Counted from the first letter of the stretch, positions 998 to 47,604 are shown. The stretch is 64,000 nucleotides of DNA from Macrostomum lignano (GCA_002269645.1 NIVC01001521.1:1-64000), one strand, 5' to 3'. Notes: generated by a model from the letters alone, not told the origin. Numbers and translations are program-made.

Positions 998-2010
998 TCA
1001 GGGCTGCTGAAGCAGCTGTCGCACCGCCTGCTCAGTCACAGCCGAGTTGGCCACAGCGACGGCGCGAATGACGCCATTCAATATGAACTGGCCTGGAGAC
1101 CGCCAGCCGATCTTGATGCAGGCGCCAGTATCGTTATAATTAAATTTGGAACCGTTGCCAGAGACCAGCGGCTCGGTCAAGAACGCGGATCCAAGCAGAA
1201 ATCGGCGTTCACCCGACGGCTTATCGGTTGTCAAGCCAGTGATGAAGAAGCGCTCAGGGTCAGCGGGCAGCACAGAGCCGCTTAGGAGCCAGTTTTGGCT
1301 GCCAGTATAGAAAAACAGACATTGCATATAGCTTGTAATGAAGCTGAGTTCCCAAAAGAGGCTTAAGAATGAGCTTCCTAGTGATTCGCAATTGTCCAGC
1401 TCAATGTAGCACTGAACCTTAGGAGTCCTCTTCAGGTGCAGCACCCAGGTGTAGGACGCCGTGAAGTCCAGACCTGTGGGGTCGTCCACCCACAGCCGAG
1501 ACGAGACTCCGTCCATGCGAGCGCCCTCACTCGTCCAGGTCACATTGAGCGACTTCATGGGTTCCTCTGTCCCTCGGAGCCGCACACCAGGTTCTCCAGC
1601 GCCGGTCCCCTGTCTCCGACCCACACAGCGCTGAAGTGCTCGTTCGCAGCGATCGCGTCGTACTCCGAGTCCACCACGGTCTCGCAGGTGCTCTCAGCGG
1701 CTACTCCCTCAGTCTGTGTAGACGAGCTGGTCATGTTGAGCAGGCGGCACACCTCACCGAAGCGGAACAACGCGCACGAGGCGTCTCGCTTGCTCCGCTG
1801 CACCACGCCGACGCTGCCGAGACGGAACGACCGACTCGACACGAAGCAGTCGAGCAGGGAGGCGGAGGGTCGCGGCTGCCGCCACACCGAGAGCGACAAG
1901 TTCACGCAGTCATTGTTGGCTACTTTGTGCTGTGCAATTTTGTCTCCGTTCAAACAGTCAGAGACCGAGAGCAGGGCGCACAGAACAGCGAGATGTAGGA
2001 GGCTGGACAT
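998..2010 (-). pseudogene. Secreted LamG/pentraxin-fold family, copy A (single -1 frameshift at ~1560)
   Basis: ORF 1555-2010 (signal peptide MSSLLHLAVLCALLSVSDC) and ORF 998-1624 join into a 337-aa homolog of 12216-13217 if one C is restored: AACCCATGA here versus AACCCC(A/G)TG in copies D and E. Could be a true pseudogene or a homopolymer sequencing error. Confidence 0.9.
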
Positions 2011-2314
2011 TTTGTGACGTACATGTATTGTAAGCTTCTGTCAGTCAGTAGAAGAGGAGTCTGCCAGTATGGAGAGCCTCGGCATCAGATCGCATCAAAG
2101 TTTTTAACTTTCTGCTGATCAGTGGAGGTGTTCTGATTGGTTTTGGTTTCCCATTGGCTCTTGCAGCATGTCGCTAACTTTGACGGCTTGTTTACCTTGA
2201 CGCTACAATTTCTTTTGAGTTGCCCTAACTTTGAAGCAACGATCACTTGAGTTCATAAAATCAGCAAGAGGGATATGTTAAACACAATGCAGACCTTTTT
2301 CTTGTTCATTTGAG

Positions 2315-2525
2315 GACAGCCCCACAGGTCTGGAACTTACGGCGTCTTGCACCTGGGTCCTGCACCTGAAGAGAACTCCCAGAGCTCAGCGCTTCATTGG
2401 GCTGGACCATTGCGGATCATTAGGAGGCGTCCAGCTTATTCTGAAGCCACTTTTGTGAATTAAGTTTATTAACAGGAGAGACGCGGTGTCTGTTTCCAGT
2501 ATAACTTTATATTGAATTCCAGAAT
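2315..2525 (+). pseudogene. Relic fragment of the LamG family, copy B
   Basis: Translates DSPTGLELTASCTWVLHLKRTPRAQRFIGLDHCGSLGG, then after a frameshift SHFCELSLLTGETRCLF. These match DDPTGLDFTASYTWVLHLKRTP...C..LG and HFWELS in the intact copies. Confidence 0.8.
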
Positions 2526-8000: not shown

Positions 8001-8818
8001 CGGAATTCGCCCGGATTTGTGTGCTGATCCGGTTCACTCGCCCGGATTTGTGTGCTGATCCGGTTCACTCTCCCGGAATTGTGTGCTAATCCGGTTCACT
8101 CTCCCGGAATTCGCCCGGATTTGTGTGCTGATCCGGTTCACTCTCCCGGATTTGTGTGCTAATCCGGTTCACTCTCCCGGAATTCGCCCGGATTTGTGTG
8201 CTGATCCGGTTCACTCTCCCGGATTTGTGTGCTAATCCGGTTCACTCGCCCGGAATTAGCCCGGATTCGGCTGCAGATCCGGTTCACTCGCCCGGAATTC
8301 GCCCGGAACTGTCACCGGAATTTTTCTTTTTGATCCGGAAAATTCGCCCGGATTCTGTAAACTTTCGTTACAGATCCGGAATTTCCACCCGGATCGGATT
8401 GCATTACTGGAATATGAAAAAATTCCGGGTGAACGCAAAAAATTCCGGGCGAAATTCCGGGTGAAAAGTTCGACGGGAGTTCTCCAGCATTACTAAATAT
8501 AAAGAAGTCAATCAGGGGTGTCTGAACTTGTCGCTGTCGGTGTGGCAACTGCCGCGACCCTCCGCCTTCCTGCTCAACTGCTTCGTGTCGAGTCGGTCGT
8601 TCCGTCTCGGCAGCGTCGGCGTTGTGCAACGGAATAAGCGAGACGCCTCGTGCGCGCTGTTCCGCTTCGGTGAGGTGTGCCACCTGCTCAACTTGACCTC
8701 GATGACACCGACTGCCGGAGTGGCCGCTGAGAGCACCTGCGAGACCGTGGTGGACTCGGAGTACGACGCGATCGCTGCGAACGAGCACTTCAGCGCTGTG
8801 TGGGTCGGAGACAGGGGA
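5034..8818 (+). pseudogene. LamG family copy C: 5' part 5034-5111 and 3' part 8480-8818, split by a DNA transposon and truncated by a LINE fragment
   Basis: Removing 5112-8477 plus one AG gives MLNMKAALAAVLAALTVFCTSCECQK-FSSITKYKEVNQGCLNLSLSVWQLPRPS..., colinear without gaps with copy D (QKSPQITKLKMSKRKCLNLSLAVWQ). Homology stops at ...WVGDRG (8818). Confidence 0.88.
5112..8477. mobile_element. 3.37-kb TIR DNA transposon, CACTA/EnSpm (CMC)-like, degenerate or non-autonomous
   Basis: Termini CCCGTCGAACTTTTCACCCGGAATTT / AAATTCCGGGTGAAAAGTTCGACGGG; 2-bp TSD (AG); dense CCGGAA/TTCCGG subterminal repeats at 5112-5530 and 7960-8477. The superfamily call is an inference from the termini, TSD length and subterminal repeats. 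Confidence 0.8.
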
Positions 8819-10150
8819 GCATCGTTTGTCGTCCCGATGCGCTTCTTGTAGTAGACCGACGCCGGGCAGTGGCCAGCAGTGGCGCGGACCTGCGAGACTA
8901 GGACTTTCTGGTTTCTGGTGCCATCATGGAAGGTGATGCGCCCCGAGTAAACTGCTTCCAGGTGGCCCTCAAGGACGGGCTGGTACCCGACGGACCTGCG
9001 CAGTAGGTTCTTGGACGCAGCAAGCGCAAGGGGGATGTGCTGTTGAGGCAGGCGCGCGGCCCGCTTGGCCTCCAGGTCGACCAGCTCATTTCCGCTAACG
9101 CCCACGTGCCCAGGGATCCACTGGATGGTAATGGCTGTGACCCGAATAGCACGTCGGATGAGATTCTTGAGTGTTCTAGGAGGCTGTTCGTAGTGGTGCA
9201 GTCGGCTTGGATGGCTCGGATGGCGGCCTGGCTGTCAGTCAGGATTGTGGCTTTCGGCGGTTCTTCCGTTAATATGTCGCCCAGGGCCAGTCAAAGGGTC
9301 CGGAGCTCAGCTACAAAGGAGCTGCACCATCTGCAGGCCGCAGCACGCCCCGAACGAATGATCAGGTCATGGCGGCTGCAGTACAGTATCCAGGCCGCCC
9401 CGCCAAGCTGAGTACCGCTGGTGGCTGATCCATCGTTGTAGTAGCAGGTGTCCGGAAGGCACTTCCTGCGGATCTCCTCGATGAGGTCACGCCTGGCCTG
9501 GATGTCTTCGGACTTGCTGCAGTGGCGGAGGAGCTCGGGAAGAGGCGGAGTCGCTTCAAGCCATTAAGCGCCTCCCCTGGGGCGCACGAATCCAGGAGTT
9601 CGGCAGCCTCTCGAACGGGAGGAGGTTGGCCAGAATTTTGCTGGCTTGCTCACGGAGTCCCCGGTTAGCTTTGAGGCGGACATCGGTTTCGCGCTCGCAA
9701 ATCTGGCGCCAGGGGTCGCTAACCGTCTTCTTTTGGACTTTTCAACGGCGGTGAGGGCTCTCTGTTTGGCCTCGGCGCTAATAGGATCGCAATTTGCCTC
9801 CTTATAGACAGCCGCACAGGAGTTTAACTTTGGCAGGCCGGTAACAAGTCTTAGGGCTTCTCGCTGTGCTCGCTCCAGCTCCTCCAAACGGCGTTTTGGG
9901 CAGCCAAGGCATCCAAGCCGTGGCTGCATGCCAAGCGACGGACTCGACGACTGCCTTGTAGACAGTACGGAGGGTGCTGCAGTCCCAGCCCCACTCTCTG
10001 GGGGCCAGGGCGCGGAGGATGCTGCATCGGCGGTGCATCTTCGAAACAACTTCGGCCGCCTGACGCTTGAAGGTAAGGCCATCGTCTATCCAGACGCCAA
10101 TGTAGCGGACTTCTCTCTTGGTGGGGAGACGAGTGCCTTCCCACTGGTGT
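8819..10150 (-). mobile_element. Non-LTR retrotransposon fragment (end of RT, then RNase H; I/Ingi/Nimb-type architecture), frameshifted
   Basis: Minus-strand translations: EVRYIGVWIDDGLTFKRQAAEVVSKMHRRCSILRALAPREWG...LRTVYKAVV (RT thumb region); YYNDGS...AEL...ILTDSQAA...WIPGHVGVSGNELVDLEAKRAA (RNase H); then RATAGHC...KRIG. Truncated at both ends. Confidence 0.88.
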
Positions 10151-11018
10151 TGTTGCTCGTGTTGTTGTTATTGACAAGTTGGCGTTAAGCGTGGACTAGT
10201 TAGATGGAAAATCCCGGCTTCGGATCAGTACCACGGCGCCATTAAGGGCCTGAATTTGGGGCTTTATAGGGCACAAAATGTCGCGAGTGACTAAGCGGTT
10301 TCTTGCTTGCAGTCAGCTTTTTGCTAAAACTTTTGGCGTATCCGCGTACCCATGCATTACCCAGACCTACATGGTTTTTGAAAACGTTGCTGTTATGGCC
10401 ACGGTTTGCCGGAGTCCCAGTTCTGATTAAGCGATCTGCAACGGAGATCTGCAACGAGGTTATTTTTTTATAAATACAAGGTTATATAATAAAAATTATC
10501 CCGGCTAGTGCTAAACCTATGCAGGTGTTTATTAATCATTTTCAACGCACTCTAGCTTCCCATTAGAGCTGAGTTTTCTCTGAAAATGCTTTAGGTAAAA
10601 TTTATTTTCGAAAAAACGTCGAAGTCTTTACGTTTGAAGCTGCTGGGCTCAAATTTGGTTTCACAGCGGATGTTTGATGAGGGTTAGAAGCCAAGGAGGC
10701 TTCACAGCATCTTGCTTGTGAGCCCAACTCATGCATGCCTCTGCTCCTGCATTCCTGCAAGCGAGTGGCTTCCGTGAGAGTTTCGCAAGCTGTTGCATCT
10801 CTGTAGGTTTTTCCAGAGAACTGTCTTGGCAAGAATACAATTGACGCTTGAATAAATAAATTATTGCTGTGCTCCGTTGTGACTGATAACGCGTGTCTGA
10901 TGCCGGGAAACAGTCGGTGGTCGCTGGCGCGTCACCAACTCTCGGGCAATTTCTTTAATCTTCTTCTTAAAATTCGTGGCTGTTGGCTGCTCTGCTCTCC
11001 ACTCTATGGTGAGTTTCT

Positions 11019-12000
11019 GCAACACACACTCCAGCTCTCATGTTCCTTGCAACACACACTGCAGCTCTCCTGTCCCTTGCAACACACACTGCAGCTCTCC
11101 TGTCCCTTGCAACACACACTGCAGCTCTCCTGTCCCTTGCAACACACACTGCAGCTCTCCTGTCCCTTGCAACACACACTGCAGCTCTCCTGTCCCTTGC
11201 AACACACACTGCAGCTCTCCTGTCCTTTGCAACACATACTGCAGCTCTCCTGTCCCTTGCAACACATACTGCAGCTCTCCTGTCCTTTGCAACACATACT
11301 GCAGCTCTCCTGTCCTTTGCAACACATACTGCAGCTCTCCTGTCCTTTGCAACACACACTGCAGCTCTCTTGTCCCTTGCAACACACACTGCAGCTCTCC
11401 TGTCCCTTGCAACACACACTGCAGCTCTCCTGTCCTTTGCAACACATACTGCAGCTCTCCTGTCCTTTGCAACACACACTGCAGCTCTCCTGTCCCTTGC
11501 AACACACACTGCAGCTCTCCTGTCCCTTGCAACACACACTGCAGCTCTCCTGTCCTTTGCAACACACACTGCAGCTCTCCTGTCCCTTGCAACACACACT
11601 GCAGCTCTCTTGTCCCTTGCAACACACACTGCAGCTCTCCTGTCCCTTGCAACACACACTGCAGCTCTCTTGTCCCTTGCAACACACACTGCAGCTCTCT
11701 TGTCCCTTGCAACACACACTGCAGCTCTCCTGTCCTTTGCAACACACTGCAGCTCTCCTGTCCCTTGCAACACACACTCCAGCTCTCCTGTCCCTTGCAA
11801 CACACACTCCAGCTCTCTTGTCCCTTGCAACACATACTCCAGCTCTCCTGTCCCTTGCAACACACACTCCAGCTCTCCTGTCCCTTGCAACACATACTCC
11901 AGCTCTCCTGTCCCTTGCAACACACACTCCAGCTCTCCTGTCCCTTGCAACACACACTCCAGCTCCTCTGCCCATTGCAACACACACTCCAGCTCCCCTG
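11019..12000. repeat. 30-bp minisatellite (GCAACACACACTGCAGCTCTCCTGTCCCTT), ~33 copies
   Basis: Direct tandem repetition. One 28-bp unit near 11745, after which units carry CTCCAG instead of CTGCAG. Confidence 0.97.
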
Positions 12001-12090
12001 CCCCTCACGTCTCATCTCATTTATAGGGACAACAGAAGTGCTGTGTGCTTCAGCTGTCCATGGTCTACAAATAGCTGCAAACTGTCTCAG

Positions 12091-12215: not shown

Positions 12216-13217
12216 ATGAATACTGTCTTCTTCTTAATAGTTTTGAGTGCCCTGCTACTCGACTGCAATGCTCAAAAGAGCCCCCAAATCACGAAGCTGA
12301 AAATGTCAAAGCGTAAGTGCCTGAACTTGTCGTTGGCGGTGTGGCAGAAGCCTCAGCCCTCGGCCTCAATGATCAACTGTTTCTCGTCCAGTCGCTCTCT
12401 CCGTCTCGGCAGCGTCGGCGTGGTGCAGCGGAACAAGCGAGACGCCTCGTGCGCGTTGTTCCGCTTCGGTGAGGTGTGCCGCCTGCTCAACTTGACCTCC
12501 ACGACATCGACTGCCGGAGTGGCCGCAGAGAGCATCTGCGACACCGTGGTGGACTCGGAGTACGATGCGATCGCTGCGAACGAGCACTTCAGCGCTGTGT
12601 GGGTCGGAGACAGGGGACCGGCGCTGGAGAATCTGGTGTGCGGCTCCGAGGGACAGAAGAACCCCATGAAGTCCAGCGGCGTCTCGTGGACGAACGAAGG
12701 CGCTCGCATGGACGGAGTCTCGTCTCGGCTGTGGGTGGACGACCCCACAGGTCTGGACTTCACGGCGTCCTACACCTGGGTGCTGCACCTGAAGAGAACG
12801 CCAGGTAAAGCAATCTTTCTGGAGCTGAGCAGCTGCATCGGATCCAGCAGCATGCTCGACCACCTCGCTGAGTACTCAGTGATGACCGGAGTGAGTCGCG
12901 CCATCTTCCTGAACCCGGGCTACTTCGCCAGATTCCAGACCGGCTCGGTGCTGCCTTCGGACCCGAACGAGTTCTTCATCGCTGGCGTCTCATTCAGGAG
13001 GCAGCAGAACCTGACTCGCTTCTTCTATGGAGCAAAGTTTCTACCGACTTCCGGCGTCTTCGCTCGGACGAACAGCTTCAACCAAGCCGGAGCCTGCGTC
13101 CACGTGGGCTGGCGGTACAACGGCAACTACATGCTGCAAGGTTTGGTCAGAGCCGTGGCCGTTTCTAATACGAATCTGCCGGAAGAAACCATCAATAAAA
13201 TTTTCTTTGGAGTGTGA
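12216..13217 (+). CDS. Secreted LamG/pentraxin-fold protein, copy D (333 aa, intact, intronless)
   Basis: Hydrophobic signal MNTVFFLIVLSALLLDCNA. Cys-containing N-terminal module, tentatively PAN/apple-like. LamG-like hallmarks ARMDGVSSRLWV..PTGLDFTASYTWVLHLK and VGWR...LQGLVRAVAVSN..L.EE.I. The ORF track start at 12150 is upstream of the likely ATG. Confidence 0.88.
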   Translation: MNTVFFLIVLSALLLDCNAQKSPQITKLKMSKRKCLNLSLAVWQKPQPSASMINCFSSSRSLRLGSVGVVQRNKRDASCALFRFGEVCRLLNLTSTTSTAGVAAESICDTVVDSEYDAIAANEHFSAVWVGDRGPALENLVCGSEGQKNPMKSSGVSWTNEGARMDGVSSRLWVDDPTGLDFTASYTWVLHLKRTPGKAIFLELSSCIGSSSMLDHLAEYSVMTGVSRAIFLNPGYFARFQTGSVLPSDPNEFFIAGVSFRRQQNLTRFFYGAKFLPTSGVFARTNSFNQAGACVHVGWRYNGNYMLQGLVRAVAVSNTNLPEETINKIFFGV

Positions 13218-21356: not shown

Positions 21357-21421
21357 TGGACAGACAGACAGACAGAGACAGACAGACACAGACAGACACA
21401 GACAGACAGAGACAGACAGAC

Positions 21422-21454
<33 letters not shown>

Positions 21455-21501
21455 ATGACAGACAGAGACAGACAGACAGACACAGACAGACAGATAGACA
21501 G

Positions 21502-21544
<43 letters not shown>

Positions 21545-21742
21545 GTCAGATGGACAGACACTAAGACAGACGGGCAGACAGAAAGACAGACGGATAGACA
21601 GGCAGATAGACAAACAGACAGACACTAAGACAGACGGACAGACAGGCAGATAGACAGACAGACAGACACTAAGACAGACGGACAGACAGAAAGACAGACA
21701 GACAGACAGGACAGAAAAACAGACAGAACGACAGACAGACAG
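21357..21742. repeat. (AGAC)n microsatellite
   Basis: Direct observation. Confidence 0.97.
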
Positions 21743-22099: not shown

Positions 22100-22195
22100 A
22101 TAGATAGACAGACAGACAGATAGACAGACAGACAGACAGACAGACAGGCAGACAGACAGACAGACAGACAGAGACAGACAGACAGACAGACAGAC

Positions 22196-22233
<38 letters not shown>

Positions 22234-22239
22234 CGACAT

Positions 22240-22271
<32 letters not shown>

Positions 22272-31825: not shown

Positions 31826-31882
31826 CTGATGGTTTTTAAATTCATTAAACTCCAGGATGGGTCCGCCCTATTAGTAATAATA

Positions 31883-33946: not shown

Positions 33947-34072
33947 CTGATTGGTTAAAAATTATCATAATTTATGATTATTATTTGCGATTTATTAAGG
34001 CTCTCCGTTAAATCTGGGTGAAATCAATAAAGCGTAGAAGCCTCAATATATCGAAAGTACAAGGAACTCCGA

Positions 34073-34480
34073 CCAACTAATCAGTGATAAAGCTACCAGA
34101 ACCCTCACCAACCAATCAGTGATGAAGCTACCAGAACCCTCACCAACCAATCAGTGATGAAGCTACCAGAACCCTCACCAATCAATCAGTGATGAAGCTA
34201 CCAGAACCCTCACCAACCAATCAGTGATGAAGCTACCAGAACCCTCACCAACCAATCAGTGATGAAGCTACCAGAACCCTCACCAACCAATCAGTGATGA
34301 AGCTACCAGAACCCTCACCAATCAATCAGTGATGAAGCTACCAGAACCCTCACCAACCAATCAGTGATAAAGCTACCAGAACCCTCGCCAACCAATCAGT
34401 GATAAAGCTACCAGAATCCTCACCAACTAATCAGTGATGAAGCTACCAGAACCCTCACCAACCAATCAGTGATGAAGCTA
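34073..34480. repeat. 35-bp minisatellite (ACCAACCAATCAGTGATGAAGCTACCAGAACCCTC), ~11 copies, EDRF1 intron 3
   Basis: Direct tandem repetition. Confidence 0.97.
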
Positions 34481-34501
34481 TGAATACCTGTAGTCACTCA
34501 C

Positions 34502-34904
34502 CTGCAGTTCCAAACTAGCCAATTCCTGTCTCGCCGAAGCCTGTACAGATTGCTGCTGCACCAAAGCAATACCCACAGAAGCGGCAGCCACTCGTAAGCA
34601 AGTCAGCAGCAATTGATTCCGGTTTAAAATCCCACTCAAAGCTTCCTCACATTCCTTCTGATCTTCTGTCTTATCGCTGGAGTCCCTATCGGAGACTTCG
34701 CCAGTAAGATGATCAGCTACCTGCAGACAGGACTTGGCAACAACGCACAGGGCGGTCGCCAACTCTCCCAGTGAACCGCCGGCAGTCACCGACAGTGCCG
34801 AGGAAACCGCGGCTGTCGTTGTGGACGGCGGAGGCAGAGGAATCGCCACGCCAGACTTGGCCATCGGGATGGCGTCCAGGTCTGACATGACCTGGCTGGA
34901 TTGG
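34502..34904 (-). CDS. EDRF1: EDRF1-like gene, exon 3 (403 nt)
   Basis: atgcag|C...CAG|gtgagt, phase 2/0, consistent with exon 2. An alternative in-frame acceptor lies 9 nt downstream. Confidence 0.72.
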
Positions 34905-34989
34905 CTGCATGGTTGGAATGTGAAATTTGGATTTTATAAATGAAAACTGAGAGCTTTCATTTGTCTGCTGCCCTGCACCCGTGTCATAA

Positions 34990-35047
34990 TGTCTGTCTGT
35001 CTGTTTGTCTGTCTCTCTGTCTGTCTGTCTGCCTGCCTGTATGTCTG

Positions 35048-35118
<71 letters not shown>

Positions 35119-35183
35119 TAGTGTCTGTCTGTCTATCTGTCTCTGTGCTTGTCTGTCTATCTATCTCTCTGCCTGTCTGTCTG

Positions 35184-35238
<55 letters not shown>

Positions 35239-35255
35239 CTCTGCCTGTCTGTCTG

Positions 35256-35294
<39 letters not shown>

Positions 35295-35451
35295 CTCTGC
35301 CTGTCTGTCTGCTTGTCTGTCTGTCTGTCTGTCTGTGTCTGTCTGTCTGTCTGTCTGTCTGTGTGTGTCTGTCTGTCTGCCTGTCTGTGTGTGTGTGTCT
35401 GTCTGTCTGTCTGTCTGTGTGTGTCTGTCTGTCTGCCTGTCTCACTGTCTA

Positions 35452-35490
<39 letters not shown>
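34990..35490. repeat. (TCTG)n microsatellite, EDRF1 intron 2
   Basis: Direct observation. Confidence 0.97.
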
Positions 35491-35492
<2 letters not shown>

Positions 35493-35603
35493 TGATCGCT
35501 ACGTGACAGCCTACAAAATAACCTTGCCTAAGTGTTTGTTCCAGCGCCTGTCTGCCACAGCATATCAATGCCTGTCACATTGGCATTCAGACTGTCAACT
35601 CAC

Positions 35604-36436
35604 CCATCGGCCGTCCCGCAAGCAGCCGCCCCAGCCGGAGCCAGAAGCAGCAGCCGCGCGGCGGCCACCGCGTGACTCAGCGAAGCCCGCGTCCTGGCCA
35701 ACGGCGTCGAGTAAACTGAGTCGGAGCTGCCGCTGCCGCCAGATTCAGCATCTTCATCATCCTCGTCAGCTTCATCATTGTCCGGTTCTACAGCGGACGA
35801 AGCTTCTGTTTCTTCATTGTGAGTCGGAGGCTGATCAGATTGCAGACTCTGCATCAGCTGACGCAAGTCCATGGTAACTGAGGAGTCTGTGACGGCTAGC
35901 AGAGCCTGTCGATGAGGTCGCCGATGAGGCTGACGTCGCATACGTTGCTGCTTCTGCTGCAGCTGCTGATTCTGCCGCTGCTGCCGACGCTGGTGCTGAA
36001 GCTCCAGACGTTCTTGTTGTCCATCAAACAGAAGCAACTCCGACAAAAGCAGATTACAAGAGGCCAGCACAGCGCGATGCTGATTAGACTGATTGAGCAG
36101 CTGCAGTGAGCAGGCTAACAGGCGGCGCAGTCGGCTCCGCTCTCGCAAACTCAGCTGACTGCGCGAGTCCGCGTCTTCAAAGCAGCTGCGAGCAACTCGA
36201 TAGCACAGCATGCCGACCGGCGTGGCGAACGGGTTGTCCTCAGGATCCTGGCCTGATCCAGCGGCTGTACCTGTTTGGCAGCCACCGCGATCACTGCTGT
36301 CCTGACTGGAAGGTCTGCTGTCACCGGCGGGTGAGGAGGCCCGACCAGTATCAGCGGCGGAGCCACCAGTGTACTGAGCTGGATTCTCGCATAGGCTGGT
36401 GAGATCGTATAGCTTCACAATGTCGCTGTTTGGCGC
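35604..36436 (-). CDS. EDRF1: EDRF1-like gene, exon 2 (833 nt)
   Basis: ccacag|GCG gives APNSDIVKLYDLTSLCE, continuing GHTYWLFK from exon 1 as in EDRF1; also contains DNPF.TPV.ML.YRVA. Donor GG|gtgagt. Confidence 0.85.
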
Positions 36437-36444
36437 CTGTGGAT

Positions 36445-36700
36445 AGGGGATTAGGGATTAGGATATTAGGGGATTGGAGATTATAAGATAAAGGATTAGA
36501 ATCTTATGGATTAGAAGATGAGGTGATTAGGGATAGGTATTATGGATTAGGAGATTAGGTTATTAGGGATAGGGGATTATGGATCAGGAGATTAGGTTAT
36601 TAGGGATAGGGTATTATGGATTAGGGAATTAGGGATAAAGTATTATGGATTAGGGGGATTATGGATTATGGATTAGGGAAGTAGAGGATTATGGATAGGA
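36445..36700. repeat. GGATTAG(G)-type short tandem repeat, EDRF1 intron 1
   Basis: Imperfect GGATTA/TTAGGG-rich array next to the exon 2 acceptor. Confidence 0.88.
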
Positions 36701-37396
36701 GATTTTGGGATTAAGTTAGCCACTGGTTGAGTTTCTGAAATTAAATCACGACCGTTTTTGGGAAATTTTGGGACCAAAAAATCCCGAATAAATATTGCAC
36801 TTTTTGGCGCGAGGGGCTGTGAGCATCCTGGCGCAACGCCTTCGGTGACATCGTCCCACAACAACTAACACTGACGACAATTCTACCCATGCACATGGAA
36901 TCGAACTATAAGAGTCGTGTGGTCGTTACTCTGACCTCTCCTACAAAATAGATCTAGCAAATGGTAGAACCTTTTTATCAAAACCAGATTACAAAAGCTG
37001 TATTAAACGGTACCAAGGCCAAGAAGCAACTCAGTCACTTGCGTCTCACAGGCATTGCAGGTAACACAGCTAAATTAGGGAAGAAGTGACTTTAGACGAC
37101 TATAAAACGATGTCACTTTATGAATTGGAATCGCACTATCGCATAACGCATTTATAATAACTCTATCTAGTCTACTTAAGTCAGTAGAAAGTTTAGCGCG
37201 TACACAACGACTTTTAGACAACACTCTTTCGTGACTCTTTTACGATTCTGCAACTCAAGTGATGCACTTATGACTCAGCAGTCGCCTCACGCTAGTGAGT
37301 TGTTTGCAATGACTCTTCAGCAATTCTCTAACGGGTGTAGTTCTGTATCCCGTCCGGAGACCCAGAAAGTTTGTCTTTAACTTGAAAAAGCCTCAC

Positions 37397-38464
37397 CTTA
37401 AACAGCCAATAGGTATGCCCTTCCTTAGTGGCATTGGCTTTAAGAAACCAAACCAGCGACCTGGCAATCTCGCGAACCGAGTCCGGATCGAAGCCGGCAA
37501 CCCTAGGAAAATTGTCCGTGCTGAATATGTCAAAGCCTTTGAATAAGCCGTTGGAGTGATAGCACATGGCCAGCTCTGGCACTCCATTGATCATGTTATC
37601 CAACCAGTAGTCAATGCCGGTCAGCACATTGATTGGCTTAGATGAGTCTCTCAGTCTGACACTGATGCAGGGATGCTTCGGCCCGCCAAATATTGGCAAA
37701 TTTGTGCCTAATAGCATTCGAACATTTTCGAAATTCCACACCATACATTTCAATGGATCTTCAAGGCCGGCGTCAGCTGATGATGCAGCTGATGAAGCTG
37801 GCACTTGCTGCTGTTGCTGCTGCTGCTGCTGCTGCAATGTACGACTCTGCCCGCTAGCTTCATCGGAAACTGACGCTGTATGATAAAGAAACTTAGTCAT
37901 CAACCTTTTGTTGCTGACATCGTCTCGCTTGTAACCAGTAGGCCTTACAGCCATGTTGTTGCTGGCGGCAAAGTGCCTCAGCCAGTGCCAGTTCTCAAAG
38001 TCCTGACGAAGCATGAAGGCGAACAGGTCGAACTCGTCAAGCAGAAGGGAATCGCCAACTCGATGCACCATCAAGGATACGTGATTGCCAGGCGAGTAAG
38101 GCATTTTAAGCAGCGATTTAACATTCCTAGATGCAGATATGACGTCAACATTGCCAACCAGCTTGGGAAATTTCGATGCCAATCGAATACTGTACTGCGG
38201 ATCGAGTTTCTCTGTGGATTCTCTGCTAGCTTGAAACACAAGCTTTTCAAGGCTGGAGCGTTGGCGAAAATAATTGGCTGGCTGCGAGTTTAAATCGAAG
38301 TTTGTATCAAATAGTGCAAAATCTCGGGATGATGATGTGGCTGCTGGAGCAGCTGAGGAGGTACCAGATGCCTCCACTGTTGGCAGGGGAAGCATTTTGG
38401 ATGACTCATCGCTTTCCCTGTTTTTGGCAGCAGGCTTGTCAGAAGTTGATTCTAAACTGGACAT
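37397..38464 (-). CDS. EDRF1: EDRF1-like gene (erythroid differentiation-related factor 1), exon 1 (1068 nt)
   Basis: VDVISASRNVKSLLKMPYS..HVSLMVHRVGDSLLLDEFD; MLLGTNLPIFGG; SKPINVLTGIDYWLDN..VPELAMCYH; NATKEGHTYWLFK|gtgagg. The seven exons total 4017 nt = 1338 aa + stop. Confidence 0.9.
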
Positions 38465-38910
38465 GTTTTCATGAAATTGAATTGGTTGAATTAAAATTGA
38501 ATTAATTGGTTGACCAAGATAAAAATGTGAATAATTTAAAAAACTTGCTTTAACTTTTTAAATTTAAAAACAGTGTTCAAATAAAATTGGATTTTTAAAC
38601 ATGAAAATAGTGCTTCCAACCCCTCCAGGAAGTCTAGAGCACACATACCTAAAGTTCTATGCATAGGTAACATAAGAATGCTAAACCAGCATTATAATAC
38701 TATTATTAAACCTATGTAAACGATTTTCTTGCTTTGTGTACAAATGAGTAATTTTGTGTTATCAATATAATATGAGACTCAGGGGTAAATAATTGTTGCA
38801 GCCATTTTTGACTAATTTTGGTTTCATAAGAATTAAGAAAGGTTAGTTTTCTATATAAACTTAGTGTCTAAAATATATAAGTGTCTAATGTCTATAGTGT
38901 CTATGTCTAT

Positions 38911-39294
38911 AGAGAGGAACAAGTAGAGAGGAGAGATGAGAGAGTAGAGGAGACAGTTAAGAGAAGAGAGAAAAGAAGAGCTGAAGAGGGAAGAGATGTG
39001 ATAAGTGGATAATAGATATGAAAGAGAAGAGAGATGAGGGAAGATACGACAAAAGATGGGAGAGAGGAGAGAGAAAACGAAAGAGTAGAGAGGAGAGAGG
39101 AGAGGAGAGAGAAAACGAAAAAGTAGAGAGGAGAGAGGAGAGGAGAGAGAAAAGAAGAGACACGAGATGAGATAAGAGAGATGAAAGAGAAGAGAGATGA
39201 AAGAGAAGAGAGATGAGGGAAGATACGAGAGAAGGAGAGATGAGAGAGGAGAGACAAGGGACGAGAGAGAAGAGAGGAAACAGAAGAGACAATA
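38911..39294. repeat. Polypurine (GA-rich) low-complexity tract
   Basis: Direct observation. Confidence 0.9.
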
Positions 39295-39920
39295 GAAATT
39301 TTAAAGGATCCAAGGGATGTAGGGAGAGGCAGGTAGAGGCCAGAGTTTGCCCATACATGTTTTAGAGTCAGACAGACATTGCCTGACATTCTGCGCAGTA
39401 CCCCAGCGGCCCAGCCAACAATATCAGTGTTTGCCTCAAATCCTAATTTTATGCAAATGTGCTCCATTTTATGTATACCTCTATCCTACTAACTATTAAC
39501 AAGTTTTTGTTTGTGTATGGCCTTAGATTTCAGAATACATGCAAAAGTAGTTCCGGGGATTGGAATTCCCTGGGTTGAAAATCCACAGGTTTCAACAGCT
39601 TGTTGCAAGAATATAATAAAACAAAAGTAAAATACTCAATTTATCCTAAGAAAATAAAGTACAAAATAGCCTTTGCACTATATGTTTATATGTCTTTAAT
39701 AACATAGCATATAAAATTTATAAAATAATAACTATATAAAATATATATTTCAATAAACAAATAAAATCTATATTAGTAAACACACTGTTCTATTCAAAGG
39801 ATATTTTTGCTTATCTATAATTATAAACAATTTATCTTCAAGCTATTAGTTTGTATTTCTATTAGTTAGGGATTATTTGATATTTTTGTATTTGCAATAG
39901 TTAGTACCTTTGGGATTGGA

Positions 39921-40313
39921 GGCTCTCCCTCTCTTCTCTATCCTGTCTCATTATCTTTCCCATATTTGCTCTCTTATCTTTCTTTTCTTTTCTTCTCTTC
40001 TTTTTACTACTCTTCTCCTCTTTTCTATCACTCTATCCTGGCTTTTCACCTCTTTACTCTATCATGTTTCATCTATTCTCTCCTATTTCTCTTATCTATT
40101 CTCTCCTTTTTCTCAACTCTATTCTTTCCTTTAGCTTCTCTTGTCTCTCTTTCTTTCTCTTTTTTCTTTCCTTTTCTTTTTTACACTTTTTTTACTTCTC
40201 TCCACCTTCTTCTCTCTTTCTCTCTCTCTCTCTCTCATAATCCTTATCCCTTGATTGTCTATCCTTTTTTCTTCTATCTTTTTTATCCCTTCTCTCACCT
40301 TTTTCTACTCTTT
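39921..40313. repeat. Polypyrimidine (CT-rich) low-complexity tract
   Basis: Direct observation. Confidence 0.9.
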
Positions 40314-40593
40314 TAGTTGCCTATTCCTTTTTATTTCTATTCTTATCTGCTTCTCAGCCTTTTTATCTGGCCTTTGAGGTAAAAAAAGGCTATTTATCCC
40401 TACTTGGAAAGCCAGTTTATGGGACATAATACTTTCATCGTTGTTTTTATGCTTTGATAATATCATTTTTCTAGCCAATATGTAGCCCAAAAAAGAATTT
40501 CTATATCTTCAACCTAATTGCAGTCTATATCAGTCTAACAACTAAGGAAATATACATATTTTTAGGAGACCATATTAAATTTTACATTACAGT

Positions 40594-41270
40594 CCATACT
40601 CAGGAAGGTGGCCTGCACGCGGGAATTTTCCCGCGTGCACAAGCCACGCTAAAATTTTGGCGTGCAAAGTTGGCGTGCAAATAGGGGTCTCAAGCCACAC
40701 CTAAATTTTCAGCGTACAAGTTTTTTACTTGGTGTGTAACCTTGGCGTGCAATTACAAACTGACAGTATATCAACAAGTCAGATATAGATGTATACACTA
40801 TATATATACAATATATAAAGTTAAACGTGAACAATTGAATTTGAATATTGATTAAACCAACTAGTTGAGGCTACAGCCAGGCCTACACTCTACAGCCAAC
40901 ATTAAAATTAAAATATCCAATAACTTTTAAACGCTCTTATTTTGTGACTCATGTAGACTTTTAGTTTATTTGTTTCTTAAAATTTGAAGAAAAAGTTTTT
41001 GATACTCACTATGTTCTTTGTAGCAAATTTCCTTTTTTTATATAAACTTTGTTTAATGTAAGTAGAAAATTTATTTAAAAATAGTATCTAATACGGTTAA
41101 TATTCAAATCACATATATATGAGGTGTACATGATTTTTGGTATTCAAGATTTTTGGCATGCAACAGAAACGTCATGTTAAGGGTTTTAAAAAATTGGCGT
41201 ACATTGGCATGCACCAAGGATTTTTCTATAAATTGATTCCCATGTGCACTTGCCACCTTCCTGACTATGG
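40594..41270. mobile_element. 677-bp MITE with perfect 8-bp TSD (hAT, P or MULE class unresolved)
   Basis: TIRs CCATACTCAGGAAGGTGGC..TGCAC / GTGCAC..GCCACCTTCCTGACTATGG; TSD ATTACAGT on both sides. Confidence 0.9.
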
Positions 41271-43112
41271 ATTACAGTTACCTTTAGATGAAACTTAATA
41301 TTAAAATTTTGTTATGATTAAATTAGGTTTGTATTGCATTTTCAAAAATATTTTGCTTTTACAAACCATGCTAGATTGCCTTGGATTGCAAATTGCTACT
41401 TACTATTAAATTGATAGAGTTTGCCTATATAGAGGGAAATGGTTCAAATTTTTTACCAAACTATTATAGCTAACATAGCCATCTTAGCCAATAAAATAAT
41501 ATAACAATTTTCAACATAACATAGTTGAAGATTGTCTATCTCAAATTTAAGAGGATTAGTAAAAGTAGAAATAGAATGGCACTATGTAGGATTTAGTGAA
41601 AAAAACTGCTTTTTTTACTGTTTGAGTAACCAGACTTAGATTTTAGAAAATTTAAGGTAGGCCTAGCCTAAGACTATCTTTGTAGTGAGTTTAGGGTAAG
41701 AACAAAATTTGGTGTAATTTAGTTGAGGAGTTTGGTTTGGGAGTCTATAGCAATCAAAATTGTACATTGACAAATATACTATATAGACAGTTTTGATTCT
41801 TAAAGATATAAATAGTAACTGAAGCTGAAGCCTGAAGGTATGCATAAATTTGCAGAATACTAATTATTTTTTTGCTGAAAAGTGGAAAAATAAAATAAAA
41901 CTTTTTCTCTTGTAGTTTTGGAATACTTTCATTTGTGTGCAAAAGTTCTATTCTAGGCCTATCCCTATCTCTAGCCTATTTATTGTTTTAAAAAACAGGA
42001 ACTGAGACAGAAGAGAGTAAAAATTAGACAAAATATACTACTTTTGAAATAAACACGTATAATAAAATATTGACTAAAAACCAATATATTGACTATAGAA
42101 AATTATTCGGCTTAAAAATTGTCAAAAAAGAGATCAATTAAATCACAATGCAATGCAATAAAAACAAAAGCACTGTGAATTGTGATATATAGTGATTAGC
42201 GACACGGAACACATTTAGATAAATGAGTTATTGTATTATTAAAAACCTGGCTGCGTATGGACTCTGAATGCCTTTACTTAGTCTTAGATGTGAGTCCAAC
42301 AACATGGGTTATTACATGTGACGTAAGTGCGGTCCGCGCACGAACTGTATAATTTAAATTTCTTTCGAATTTATAAGGAACTTTCTGGAAAGTTCGTTTC
42401 TTGAAAAAAATTATTCTAATATAACAAATACATAATTACCTTTTAGCTAATTTAGTAAATTCATTTAAAAAAAAATTACTTTAGCAATTAAACATAGTTT
42501 TCTCTAATATAACTACAGATAAAAAAACAAACTATGATGCGCTATAGAAACGATGGGAACGGAAAAGTATTTGAGCGATATATTTGGGTATGGTTCGATA
42601 TTTTTATGAGTTCAGAGAAAGCAAGGCATACACGAGTGAGCGTAAAATGGGGTGAGGCGATCAATAAAGAGTGAAAGTGGTGCGATCAATAATTGAGGAA
42701 TGTGCATAAAAGCAATATAAATATGGGGTTTAGCATCGGTTTAGCCTAAATAAGCGTACACCTACCGTATTGCAAAACGCAAAAGTACAAGAAATACCGC
42801 AAAAAGTTGCAGCTCTAAACCACATAAGGAGCTACTTTAGCTTACGGTAATACTATTAACGGTTCTAGGATATTTGGTCAACTTGCGCAGCAACCCGACA
42901 TTATATTCACCCATTATTCATTATTAAAGCCAAAATTATTCACCCGTCATGTTAGACTGTTAGCTGTTCATCTGCACTGAATGATTAATTAATCTACTTG
43001 TACAATTGTATTTTAGTTATGATCTCTCAGAACTAGTGCAGTGCACCCGCGCCGCGGCCTCGTGGCATGTATCATTCGCATTACATTTTAATACATGTAT
43101 TTAAAAAATGCC

Positions 43113-43238
43113 TGAAGTATCGCACCCCTGCAACGGTACGTGAAACCAATTCCTGCAGCTGTCGCAGTCCCAGTCTGTCATCACCATATCATTGACGCCC
43201 TTTTCGGCAAACAGCTGGCATTTTGGATCTCGCTGACA
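43113..43238 (-). pseudogene. PHD-finger-like relic, possibly transposon-derived
   Basis: CQRDPKC...DWDCDSCRNWFHVPLQGC resembles the W..CD.C..WFH..C.G PHD pattern. No surrounding gene was identified. Confidence 0.35.
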
Positions 43239-43798
43239 TCCGATCTGAAAATAAAATCTAGCTGTATATACCTTTCTTTTTAATCCTAGCTTGCTGTATT
43301 TTTTCGCTGGTAACTTTCTTGGCTGGCAAATATTTTTTGGCTGGCAAATTTCCGGCTGCAGGCAACTTTCGGCTGGCAAAGCTTGTTGACCCGGCCGCTG
43401 CTTATAAGAACCCCGAGGAGCTCCTCGCTGCATGGAGAGAGCCTACGATGTATACAATTAGTCTGATGCCATATGATCTCTGGCCATCGTTCGACATACA
43501 TTTAAAGATAGTTTAAAGATTATCAGCAGGTCACACGCCCGAAAGCAATTAAAAATTCTGCACAGTACCCACCAAAAATGTGATGCTGTACTAGCTATAA
43601 TAAAAATAAATTAGCCGTTGTAGGATTAATTAAGTTTATTGTTTTCAAGCACTGAACATAAATAACGTTATACATGTACTTCTACAACATGGGTCCATGG
43701 ATTTTCTCTGTACATGTACTTCAGAAATTAAAAGCAATGTTTTGCTTTAACCAAATCTGAATTCTTCTACCACGTCATGACAGGGTAATGAGGGTTAT

Positions 43799-45004
43799 TC
43801 AGCCGCTCCCGAAAAGAATATTGCGGCACATTTCTCCGTACATGGAGTTCCGGCTTCTTATGCTAGACATGTTCTCATCGTCGAATGTACCAAACAGGTG
43901 TACAGCGTAGTTTTTCTTCCTCCAGTCCCACCGGTGCTGCTGTCCGATCCCGTAGATCCAGGCCACCTCGTCCGGAGTCCAGTTCGGACGGTTCAAACTG
44001 TCTTCCTCCACGTGGCACAGATCTGGAAACGCGCGCTGCATCGAGTGCGGCAAACGTACCGAGTGCTCATTCCACGCGTCATCATTGAACACCTGATATG
44101 CGGTGTGCCACATGGCCAGAAATGTCCAGTTTGGAGCGGACAAGAAGATGCCGTTGCACAGTCCATCGCTCGTCTCTCTGCCGATAGTGAAGGCAAACTT
44201 CCGCAACGGGTCCAGCGGCTTCAGCACGAGAACGTCGATGTCTAGATACACGCCGCCAAATACCAGCACAGCCTCCAGCCTCATCACATCCGACTGGTGC
44301 TCTCTGCCACGAACTGGCACCGAGTACACCGATGTGGGAACCGGTCTCTGAGCCATGATAATTTTCTCATCCCACTCCGCCTCGGTGAGGTTCTTCCTCA
44401 CTCGGTCCCACCACTGTCCGGTAGGCAGCCTGCCTGGAGCGTACCACAGCATCATGCGGTGCGGCTTCATCACGTGAAGGCAGCTGAGAATGCTGACCAT
44501 GTGGTGAAACTGCAGCTGGGTGTCGCCGAAGGGTAGCACAAAGTGGGCAACGTTTGGCACCAGGAAGCCAGGCTGAACGGTGGACTTGGCGACAGCCTGG
44601 ACCTCCGCTATGGTGAAGCGCCTGCCGCGGGGGCTGTGCAGCACCCACGCACTGGTATTGAACACCGGCAGGTAGCTCAGCATCATCTGGTCCAGCTGGT
44701 TTCTGTGCGGGCCGCTGTGCTGCCTGATGACCTCATCCCTAAGCTTTGGGAAATTCTGCCTGAGAGCCTGCAAGTCCAGCTGCAGGTGTGTAGTGTAGGC
44801 CTGTGCAACTTGGTGTCTCGGGGTCAGAGCCGGCACGCTGAGCAGATGCAGGTAGAACAGACCGGCAAGCAGGCAGCATGCGAGCGGCAGCAGCAGCAGC
44901 AGCCGCCTTCTTGAGAAATAAAGCATCTTACCGAGTGCTGACTGACAAAAAGATTGAAAGTCGTTCGACACGCCATTCTGGGATGCGGGAGCTTCGTGAG
45001 TCAT
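43799..45004 (-). CDS. Glycosyltransferase family 32 (DXD; alpha-1,4-glycosyltransferase-like), type II membrane, intronless
   Basis: Basic residues plus a TM segment (RRRLLLLLPLACCLLAGLFYL); VPNVAHFV; HQSDVMRLEAVLVFGGVYLDIDV; LCNGIFLS; YAVHL. ATG at 45004 or 44926. Confidence 0.9.
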   Translation of the reverse strand: MTHEAPASQNGVSNDFQSFCQSALGKMLYFSRRRLLLLLPLACCLLAGLFYLHLLSVPALTPRHQVAQAYTTHLQLDLQALRQNFPKLRDEVIRQHSGPHRNQLDQMMLSYLPVFNTSAWVLHSPRGRRFTIAEVQAVAKSTVQPGFLVPNVAHFVLPFGDTQLQFHHMVSILSCLHVMKPHRMMLWYAPGRLPTGQWWDRVRKNLTEAEWDEKIIMAQRPVPTSVYSVPVRGREHQSDVMRLEAVLVFGGVYLDIDVLVLKPLDPLRKFAFTIGRETSDGLCNGIFLSAPNWTFLAMWHTAYQVFNDDAWNEHSVRLPHSMQRAFPDLCHVEEDSLNRPNWTPDEVAWIYGIGQQHRWDWRKKNYAVHLFGTFDDENMSSIRSRNSMYGEMCRNILFGSG

Positions 45005-45201
45005 GATTGGCAATATCAAAGCTTTCTTAAGCTATTACTCATTTAGTTAGATATATAGATAAATACTGCTATAGTTAGTCATAATTATAGATATTGCTAT
45101 TAAAGCTTAAGGCAAAAAATCCAACATTTCGACCATAGACAAAAGTCTGAAACTAAAATTAGACAAAAAATCTCAGTGCACACCTTTATAACCACTTCAA
45201 C

Positions 45202-45477
45202 CACAGAATATACACAGAATGCCAAATCGAGCGATTTCCATGAAGCCGAATTAAAATTCGTGTGCACTACTGACTGAACTTAGCTCAGACTGAACTTAAT
45301 TTTCATTTGAAAGCAAAGAATAAAAATCGCTCTTGGAATAGTCTATGGCAAAAACTCAAGCCCTACTTATCAACGCTTCACAACAACGCTTCACAAGAGT
45401 AGGCTGATGTGATTTCAATTCTTGCACCGATTTTTTAAACAAAAATTCTCGAATCGGCATTCTGTGTATATTCTGTG
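45202..45477. mobile_element. 276-bp MITE with 8-bp TSD
   Basis: 22-bp perfect TIR CACAGAATATACACAGAATGCC / GGCATTCTGTGTATATTCTGTG; TSD ACTTCAAC / ATTTCAAC. Confidence 0.85.
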
Positions 45478-46593
45478 ATTTCAACTTCGGTTTTGAGTGC
45501 GCTCAATTTTGACTGACTGACTCACTACTGACTGACTGACTAACTGATTAACTGACTGACACCCACCAAGAGACAGGGGCGCCCACACCAAGACACTAAC
45601 TATTGGCGCCTCTTTAGGGTTGCAGCCTGTCCAATTAAAAATACCTGTGTGCGTGTCGACTAGCTCTCTTGCCTGAGCAGAAATTGTGCTTAGCTACAAG
45701 TCTCTCTGCAAGCCGTCTTACCTACTCATTGTAGCTATTGTTCGTTCCTTTGTTGGATTTGTTGGCTCAACTGCCAAAGTCTCTCATTAGGATCGTTAAT
45801 TAGAGCAACGGCAATACGCGTGGGTTCCCAGGATGCATTGTGGGGGATTGCTATAGTTACGAAGACGGAATGCTCTCAGAAAACTCTCCCAATTCTCCCA
45901 GAAAGTCAGAATTTTCCCATGAACGCTAATTTATTCAATACAACTCAGTGCAGCCTTCCCAGGCCTTCCAATTTCATCAGCACGTCGACCGCATGTGTCT
46001 GCATCTGCCATGACTTCTCAAATTTCTGGACCTCCAACAGGTGACTCAAGTTGACAATTGCGAATGTTGAAAACAGTGTCTCCAATTGAAAGTCCATCCG
46101 AATTTCGCGCTTTCATTTATTGCAAGAAGAATAAAGAGACCAATAAAACAAATTTTACAGTTTGTGTGCTGTAAATGTGTTTTGTAAAGTATATAAGATT
46201 GAATTTTTAATTGTTCATGCCATTAACATTCTCGATAGGACCCCTGTCGTGCGTGAGAGACTATTATCAATTTATTGCTTATTCTTATTTAAGCTAATTT
46301 AAGCATGCAGAACCGAAACAATTTAAAGAAATAAGAAGGGAATTCCTTATATCACTTTAAGTACTCTTAGAATATATTTAGATCAAAAGACCATTTTTAG
46401 TATATAGGACATTAAGTTCTTTTCAACCAGATATTTGGTCATTAATACATGCACGTTCACAAAAAAGAATCTGCATTACATATTTTTATCAAGAGCATTG
46501 ACCGAGCCTTTGCCAGAATTCCAGACAAATTTCCAAATTTTCACTTGCCAAAGGTCACATTCGTCTGAATCAAAGTATTTTTAAATCGACTGC

Positions 46594-47604
46594 CTAATTA
46601 AAAAGCTTTCGAACGGCCTCATCGTCCAGAGCCGTGTTGGCCACGGCCACAGCCCTGACGACCCCATCGAGTAGGCCGTAGTTTGGGTAGCGCCAGCCGA
46701 TCTTAATGCAGGCACCAGTGGTATTGTAGCTGGACAAAGTATAGGTGACAAATTCCGAATCGATGGAGTGCGCGGAGCCTGGGAAAAATCTGCACTGGCT
46801 CGCCGTTCGGTCAAAGACAACGCCTAAAGTTAAAAATTGCTGCGGGTCGATGGGCAGCACAGAGCCGGTTTGGAATCGGCGTGGCTGGCCCGGCATCAGA
46901 TTCAGGGACCGCGTGATGTTCGAGAGCATGCTGAGCTCCCAGAAATGATCACGGTACTCGAAGCTGCCGCCCAAATTGCTGCAGCTGCTCAACTCCAAAT
47001 AGCATTGCTTCTTGGGAGTCCTCTTCAGGTGCAGCACCCAGGTGTAGGACGCCGTGAAGTCCAGACCTGTGGGGTCGTCCACCCACAGCCGAGACGAGAC
47101 TCCGTCCATGCGAGCGCCTTCGTTCGTCCACGAGACACCGCTGGACTTCACGGGGTTCCTCTGTCCCTCGGAGCCGCACACCAGGTTCTCCAGCGCCGGT
47201 CCCCTGTCTCCGACCCACACAGCGCTGAAGTGCTCGTTCGCAGCGATCGCGTCGTACTCCGAGTCCACCAGGGTTTCGCAGCTGCTCTCAGTGGCCACTC
47301 CCGAAGTCGATGTCGTGGAGGTCATGTTGAGCAGGCGGCACACCTCACCGAAGCGGAACAGCGCGCACGAGGCGTCTCGCTTGTTCCGCTGCACCACGCC
47401 GACGCTGCCGAGACGGAACGACCGACTCGACACGAAGCAGTCGAGCAGGGAGGCGGAGGGCGAAGGCTTCTGCCAAGCAGACAAAGAAAAGTTGAGGCAG
47501 CGTTCCTTGATTAGTTTGAACGTCGTCACTTTTGTTTTCTCTTGAGCATCGCAGCCGTGAATTGTGGCGCACATTAGCGCAACGAAAAAAAATTCCTGCT
47601 TCAT
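46594..47604 (-). CDS. Secreted LamG/pentraxin-fold protein, copy E (336 aa, intact, intronless)
   Basis: Signal MKQEFFFVALMCATIHGCDA from ATG 47604; colinear with copies A and D. Confidence 0.88.
   Translation of the reverse strand: MKQEFFFVALMCATIHGCDAQEKTKVTTFKLIKERCLNFSLSAWQKPSPSASLLDCFVSSRSFRLGSVGVVQRNKRDASCALFRFGEVCRLLNMTSTTSTSGVATESSCETLVDSEYDAIAANEHFSAVWVGDRGPALENLVCGSEGQRNPVKSSGVSWTNEGARMDGVSSRLWVDDPTGLDFTASYTWVLHLKRTPKKQCYLELSSCSNLGGSFEYRDHFWELSMLSNITRSLNLMPGQPRRFQTGSVLPIDPQQFLTLGVVFDRTASQCRFFPGSAHSIDSEFVTYTLSSYNTTGACIKIGWRYPNYGLLDGVVRAVAVANTALDDEAVRKLFN

Follow-up and report, generated by a model that had tools for sequence, protein, structure and literature searches.

Old dispersed paralogs of an uncharacterised secreted protein family in Macrostomum lignano share an internal segment probably homogenised by interlocus gene conversion

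The stretch of 64,000 nucleotides (nt) of the flatworm Macrostomum lignano analyzed here (GCA_002269645.1 NIVC01001521.1:1-64000; the window) carries three full-length copies, A, D and E, of a family of putatively secreted, lectin-like proteins. With a probability of about 0.8, they are old dispersed paralogs in which an internal segment, the core, was homogenised by repeated short-tract interlocus gene conversion. A, D and E are intronless paralogs with N-termini, C-terminal ~140 codons and flanks of the genes diverged, to synonymous saturation in the coding parts, whereas an internal segment of ~430-500 bp would be kept near-identical by short-tract interlocus (ectopic) conversion among the copies, with frameshifted or fragmentary copies as possible donors. 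As conversion is sequence-dependent, its tracts would be unable to enter segments that had already diverged. The outcome would be an all-or-none mosaic, in which identical blocks alternate with a few dimorphic patches swapped between loci, and a sharp 3' edge right after the motif HLKRTP, both because tracts cannot spread into the diverged segments. Conversion or crossing-over in the shared core may also reshuffle the N-terminal heads and the C-terminal tails. The process itself, partial-gene concerted evolution, is already known; the family is uncharacterised, and it is not a new immune-style system.

Family pieces were located by tblastn with D and E as queries against the window, which revealed the three full copies and two fragments, B and C. 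Copies D (12216-13217, plus strand; 333 amino acids, aa) and E (46594-47604, minus strand; 336 aa) are each one intact, continuous open reading frame (ORF) without introns. Copy A (998-2010, minus strand) is built likewise save for a 1-bp deletion, CCC at 1559-1561 where D and E have CCCC, which shifts the frame and splits it into ORFs at 1555-2010 and 998-1624. The three full-length copies listed by the first-pass annotation do all span the full length, but the ORF of A is broken; this copy is either a pseudogene or bears a homopolymer sequencing error. Fragment B (2314-2495, plus strand) is a degenerate, inverted partial copy adjoining A. It includes the final ~65 nt of the core together with the beginning of an A-type tail and matches 1313-1487 at 76% identity. 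Fragment C (8474-8827, plus strand) contains the 5' half of the core only, with an identity of 89-92% to the three full copies over 8518-8818. Its family sequence stops after VWVGDRG, at 8818-8827, and is followed by different sequence. The region 3' of it (8828-10200) is GC-rich (58%), and its ORFs resemble by eye a retroelement without long terminal repeats (non-LTR; ribonuclease H/reverse transcriptase-like motifs), with no match in Pfam. Both extra pieces are degenerate fragments and not cassette arrays of the kind that would mark somatically or combinatorially diversified immune-type receptors (FREP, Dscam, VLR or 185/333 type), and unrelated genes lie between the full copies, which are scattered over 47 kb.

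The homogenised core runs from CFVSSRS to HLKRTP (aa 56-197) in E (47014-47439, minus strand) and corresponds to 12378-12803 (plus strand) in D and 1421-1848 (minus strand) in A. Its blastn identity is 90.1% between A and E (504 nt), 88.7% between A and D (488 nt) and 91.4% between D and E (522 nt). The nucleotide similarity of E to the other copies reaches over ~46980-47500, while outside the core no blastn similarity among A, D and E is found, non-coding flanks included. A core previously described as nucleotide-identical is near-invariant and contains exact blocks, but at ~90% overall it is not identical throughout. Direct comparison confirmed the exact A/E blocks of 104 bp (1422-1525 and 47015-47118, respectively) and 118 bp (1559-1676 and 47153-47270), which are 100% identical and maximal. 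The ~98 bp thought to be shared exactly by D correspond to a run of 98 nt, the longest that is invariant in all three copies (permutation p ~1e-4).

Synonymous divergence (dS) was estimated by the Nei-Gojobori method over the 143-codon core, the tail and the N-terminal 55 codons of A, D and E. The core has a dS of 0.11-0.21, compared with 1.4-2.3 for the tail and 0.9-1.3 for the N-terminal region. The first-pass annotation had named comparable dS in core and tail as an outcome that would contradict exchange between the copies, and the two values lie far apart. It had also noted a diverged N-terminus, and this divergence is real (27-43% identity among the copies), yet it extends over ~55 aa and not ~35. 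Because synonymous sites in the tails and flanking coding regions are saturated and the flanks lack detectable similarity, A, D and E are paralogs of considerable age. The ratio of non-synonymous to synonymous divergence (dN/dS) of the tail is ~0.3-0.45, with dS saturated as in old paralogs; this gives no sign of positive selection, and the term hypervariable is not supported for the tail. The GC content at third codon positions (GC3) is 0.82-0.85 in the core versus 0.64-0.73 in the tail, which is compatible with GC-biased conversion. At the protein level, residues 56-125 of the core are 89% identical among A, D and E. This goes beyond protein constraint alone, because the same residues are only ~19% identical to distant relatives, no higher than the tail (15-21%).

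Inside the core, the variable sites tell conflicting histories. A series of 12 consecutive variable sites groups A and E against D, while later runs group D and E against A. The pattern switches 18 times along the core, which is too few to be expected by chance (permutation p ~8e-5).

A second line of evidence comes from a related locus. The region 34072-53639 of the window is collinear with GCA_002269645.1 NIVC01000143.1 (L003) at 97-98% identity. The M. lignano genome comprises three subgenomes with a divergence in single-nucleotide polymorphisms (SNPs) of 1.9-2.4% between them (PMC10733133). The identity between the window and L003 fits this level, and E and its syntenic copy on L003, E', would then be homeologs. 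E' (6369-7379 of L003) is an intact ORF that is 97% identical to E. It is absent from the gene list of its GCA_002269645.1 record, and annotation of the family in M. lignano is probably incomplete. Look-ups of the exact products P0001, E and D yielded no contig, and A and D have no annotated gene within 10 kb. Of 1011 nt, 21 separate E from E': 4/165 N-terminally, 13/426 within the core and 4/420 within the tail. More than half of these differences (11/21) sit in a single 25-nt patch (47119-47143), where E' has exactly the sequence of A (SLNVTWTSE) and E exactly that of D (SSGVSWTNE). Sequence comparison places the two-state patch at 1526-1558 in A and ~12674-12698 in D, between identical blocks, just as it had been described before. 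SLNVTWTSE, which adds an N-V-T glycosylation sequon, is carried by A, E' and the M. lignano proteins P0001 and P0002, and SSGVSWTNE by E and D.

Judged from these sequences, the E/E' patch demonstrates what appears to be a recent conversion, dated after the genome duplication. Between paralogs the core shows the least divergence of all parts, but between the homeologs E and E' it shows the most, a contrast that favours conversion, as nucleotide constraint or a fast-mutating tail would predict the opposite. P0002 in turn combines an A-type head (83% identity) with a D-type tail (69%), suggesting that exchange through the core may also reassort heads and tails. The dS contrast, the incongruent site mosaic, the E/E' patch and the raised GC3 form a conversion signature that upholds the earlier proposal of gene conversion or segment exchange in the core.

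The same data bear on two explanations without homogenisation. In the first, the copies are young duplicates whose tails and N-termini were driven apart by hypermutation or diversifying selection of an immune type, possibly with somatic mosaics. The proteins do appear secreted and lectin-like, and the edge between constant and variable parts is sharp and lies at the same residue in two subfamilies. Nonetheless, the synonymous sites of the tail are saturated with a dN/dS of only ~0.3-0.45, and the non-coding flanks lack the similarity by which recent copies would still align. Between the homeologs the tail is, moreover, the least diverged part (4/420 versus 13/426 for the core), and the conflicting site patterns inside the core require exchange between copies, so that we regard recent duplication as very unlikely. 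In the second, the core would have a further function at the nucleotide level, as an overlapping antisense gene, a structured RNA or a small-RNA target. Long antisense ORFs indeed run across the core (e.g., 47054-47545, plus; 12353-12763, minus; 1436-2017, plus), but such open frames are expected at a sense GC3 of ~0.83, they have no Pfam match, and there is no Rfam match in the window. Furthermore, the core is most diverged between E and E', contrary to nucleotide constraint, and its differences are blocks derived from paralogs and not scattered substitutions. A constraint of this kind is extremely unlikely to account for the core. As an observation in its own right, two antisense frames are open across the core in every copy (46837-47545, plus; 12353-12863, minus; 1436-2017, plus; 8312-9105, minus).

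An assembly artefact would produce a similar picture if consensus polishing or collapse among paralogs had created the identical blocks and the swapped patch. In the M. lignano genome, several mapping loci exist for 93% of the read pairs (PMC10733133), and the homopolymer indel in copy A is typical of long-read error. The core is, however, seen in the window, in L003 of GCA_002269645.1 and in P0001 and P0002 from an older assembly; an analogous mosaic occurs in unrelated environmental assemblies; and the copies are embedded in unique, diverged flanks. For the whole core an artefact is improbable, and we give this explanation very little credence.

Several points do weigh against interlocus conversion as the account of this family, or limit its reach. 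The E/E' patch swap may in principle stem from short-read polishing across near-identical paralogs. P0002, a chimeric gene model, stems from the older, fragmented assembly, and its combination of head and tail could be due to a mis-join. At the nucleotide level, the sample consists of three full copies, two fragments and one homeolog. Purifying selection is seen to contribute to the amino acid conservation of residues 126-197, which are 35-45% identical to distant relatives compared to 15-21% elsewhere. Finally, the function of the proteins is wholly inferred, with window copies that lack a Pfam match and a predicted model of medium confidence.

The family proteins are ~335 aa long and have a hydrophobic, signal-peptide-like N-terminus, eight conserved cysteines and N-glycosylation sequons, of which copy E has four. 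An N-terminal, cysteine-containing alpha/beta region of ~110 aa is predicted, followed by a LamG-like jelly-roll that would run from about residue 126-166 to the C-terminus. AlphaFold2 on an alignment of 17 sequences gave a model of medium confidence (predicted local distance difference test score, pLDDT, 67.8; predicted template modelling score, pTM, 0.67), while an alignment of three sequences yielded an unusable one (pLDDT 31.6). The loops at residues 227-240 and 281-295 have a pLDDT below 50, and no carbohydrate- or calcium-binding loop motif could be assigned in the predicted model. Foldseek retrieved 179 matches in the PDB at E <= 0.001 with this medium-confidence model, the top ones (E ~6e-7) including trans-sialidase lectin-like domains, chains of botulinum neurotoxin/NTNH binding domains, domain 4 of AbnA (template modelling score 0.63 relative to the target) and calreticulin. 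Sequence searches of the PDB with E alone and with the family profile gave no match. Likewise, D and E match no Pfam family at E <= 1, nor does E at E <= 10. Sub-threshold matches to Laminin_G_3 (PF13385) do occur in 7 of the 17 members scanned, all of them distant relatives, and cover the entire profile (positions 1-151 of 151), beginning at the FDG-x-SS motif and reaching the C-terminus. The best of these, P0013 (25.9 bits, E 1.2e-5), remains below the gathering score of 27.6 bits. The C-terminal motif G-x-V/I-R-x-V-x-I/V-x-N-x-x-L/M-x-x-x-E-I is one that we take to resemble the C-terminal strand of Laminin_G_3. These matches back the LamG/concanavalin-A-like fold that was suggested at first sight, but not its pentraxin assignment, given that pentraxin (PF00354) has no Pfam match and is absent from the 50 Foldseek matches listed of the 179. 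The family thus shares a predicted beta-sandwich jelly-roll and lectin-like best fold matches with the Laminin_G_3/ConA-like superfamily, but falls below the Pfam threshold and carries the additional N-terminal cysteine-containing region of ~110 aa.

A word-indexed search of 5.8 billion proteins returned a single relative, the M. lignano protein P0001. When 1.84 billion cluster representatives (50% identity) were searched exhaustively with a profile, 23 hits resulted, about 20 of which are family members. The sources of 20 hits were looked up and proved to be M. lignano or environmental contigs of ~1 kb from the Joint Genome Institute (JGI). M. lignano and short environmental contigs are the only sources in which the family is seen. 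The literature searched contains no description of it, in keeping with the initial impression of a family not yet characterised. One candidate, P0021, was rejected as a spurious match to a repeat protein. P0017, P0003, P0015, P0018 and P0022 represent chimeric gene models that join the family domain to unrelated sequence, and such models account for the artefactual UniRef names of family entries (peptidase S1, ricin B, fibrinogen C and others). [quoted passage not shown]

A second subfamily is present on six environmental contigs (L002 and L006-L010), with representatives that are ~22-28% identical to E. A scan of metagenome DNA with its core found one further contig only, L009. The architecture of the window copies returns here in sharper form. 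Blocks with 100% nucleotide identity alternate with blocks of ~50%, one of the former covering the 5' untranslated region and the signal peptide, and similarity vanishes right after LRLKR, which is homologous to the HLKR of the window copies. At the patch position two forms, NVT[WF]TSE and GVEWTKE, are spread independently of the neighbouring blocks. Both states, NVT[WF]TSE with a sequon and GV[SE]WT[NK]E without, occur in both subfamilies and involve three co-varying residues. Either conversion has moved an ancient dimorphism around, or coupled substitutions arose in parallel. At the 3' ends of L009 and L010, the last 17-44 nt of the coding sequence are tandemly re-iterated just after the stop codon, probably due to a loop in the assembly graph. 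One protein, P0037 (NCBI MEE4248860.1), was deposited within a metagenome-assembled genome of a Kangiellaceae bacterium. It is near-identical to the JGI member P0016 and falls in the same 90%-identity cluster. Its contig is almost certainly eukaryotic and mis-binned with the bacterium, with a flatworm as the probable source. The deposit in a metagenome-assembled genome suggests that the environmental contigs are genomic DNA. For the second subfamily, a reading by which shared exons are alternatively spliced is disfavoured, since the M. lignano genes are continuous ORFs and P0037 suggests genomic contigs.

The boundary motif HLKRTP corresponds to residues 192-197 (47014-47031 in E and 12786-12803 in D). 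It lies at the end of a predicted beta-strand (residues 187-195; pLDDT 88 for the block 191-200), ~30 residues inside the LamG-like domain and not at a domain border. The homogenised part hence comprises mostly the separate N-terminal cysteine-containing region along with the first jelly-roll strands, and the diverged tail ~85% of the lectin-like domain, including the low-confidence loops. The idea of a homogenised scaffold that carries a diversifying binding sheet is not supported, as the boundary falls within the LamG-like domain. Similarity is lost at the same residue in both subfamilies (HLKR and LRLKR, respectively). A motif of the form R-x-[KR]-R is found at the boundary in 14/24 members scanned (16/24 if R-x-x-R is counted), with HLKR in the window copies, and fits the consensus of furin-type convertases.

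These features invite a precursor model, in which the motif is a proprotein-convertase site and a constant pro-region is cut from a variable tail that is released as in toxin or neuropeptide precursors. Both the frequency of R-x-[KR]-R or HLKR at this position and its exact coincidence with the loss of similarity in the two subfamilies would suit such processing. Yet, the motif is part of the highest-confidence predicted strand (residues 187-195) and of the jelly-roll spanned by the Laminin_G_3 profile (~residue 166 to the C-terminus), and a basic residue followed by proline is presumably usual at this strand of Laminin_G_3. In addition, the signal is the most conserved part of conotoxin-type precursors, while A, D and E have diverged signal peptides. 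We consider processing at the boundary quite unlikely. It is also unlikely, albeit conceivable, that selection maintains a modular repertoire in which heads, a sequon-switching patch and tail cassettes are reassorted among loci, by conversion or recombination in the core, around a breakpoint fixed at R-x-K-R across subfamilies and species. If true, this hermaphroditic flatworm would gain a combinatorial diversity of secreted lectin-like proteins that serve to recognise mates, sperm or self versus non-self, or that act in defence.

The neighbouring genes in the window are animal genes in long single ORFs, encoding an alpha2delta calcium-channel subunit, kindlin, EDRF1 and a DXD glycosyltransferase; the latter is 99% identical to M. 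lignano BOX15_Mlig026197g1. The paralogous glycosyltransferase loci L004 and L005 contain no copies of the family. The alpha2delta-like protein (25667-29479, plus strand; 1270 aa with VWA_N, VWA and Cache domains) and kindlin (52438-54780, plus strand; 780 aa) are each encoded by one uninterrupted ORF. Long ORFs also exist for a part of EDRF1 (37328-38464, minus strand) and for a fragment of an amiloride-sensitive (DEG/ENaC-type) channel (61386-62342, minus strand), and the genes of the region have few introns. Various repeats are interspersed. A 30-bp tandem repeat (11018-12005; 33 copies, 95% matches) lies ~200 bp upstream of the start codon of D and yields long spurious ORFs in several frames. 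Five tetranucleotide arrays of (GACA)n/(AGAC)n and (GATA)n with up to 218 copies (21359-21742, 22098-22690, 34990-35492, 55146-55478 and 56489-57362) align with one another, and a 28-bp satellite with a partly self-complementary unit (31881-33387; 54 copies) aligns to its own reverse complement at ~70% identity.

Partial-gene conversion is familiar from paired Siglec receptors, RHD/RHCE, red/green opsins, gamma-globins, MHC and KIR. The CEACAM family is an example of partial-gene concerted evolution by interlocus conversion (PMC7042247). The family described here resembles such cases in that a tract within old paralogs is homogenised, synonymous sites included, while the flanking segments have escaped; the tracts are short and patchy, pseudogene copies possibly participate, and the edges are sharp where homology ends. 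On the contrary, it is uncharacterised and intronless, its copies lie among unrelated genes over 47 kb, and the boundary is located inside a single fold instead of at an exon or domain border and recurs in a distant subfamily.

Variable-protein repertoires such as the trans-sialidases and MASP of Trypanosoma cruzi, rif/stevor of Plasmodium, the fibrinogen-related proteins (FREPs) of snails and 185/333 of sea urchins likewise consist of multicopy secreted or surface proteins whose constant and diverged blocks are shuffled by recombination or conversion. The best structural match of the family is even a trans-sialidase lectin-like domain, at the fold level only (~10% identity). With ~20 members among 23 profile hits, however, no large repertoire is evident, and the tails show no sign of positive selection. 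Finally, the VERL repeats of abalone illustrate concerted evolution in a reproductive protein. Here too, parts of a binding protein are homogenised and others are free to diverge, in a lineage-specific protein of species under strong sexual selection, but the copies of our family are dispersed genes and not tandem repeats within one gene.

Interlocus conversion between old paralogs, if it is indeed at work, makes this family a clean example of how sequence-dependent conversion goes on in an animal whose three subgenomes formed recently. It also shows how conversion shapes a lineage-specific secreted family in a part of the genome where annotation and read mapping fail, as illustrated by the unannotated E'. 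The proteins may act as secreted factors that bind glycans or other proteins, with the diverged tail giving each paralog its own ligand specificity. These ~20 lectin-fold proteins, whose C-terminal parts are specific to each paralog, are candidates for a role in reproduction, adhesion or defence.

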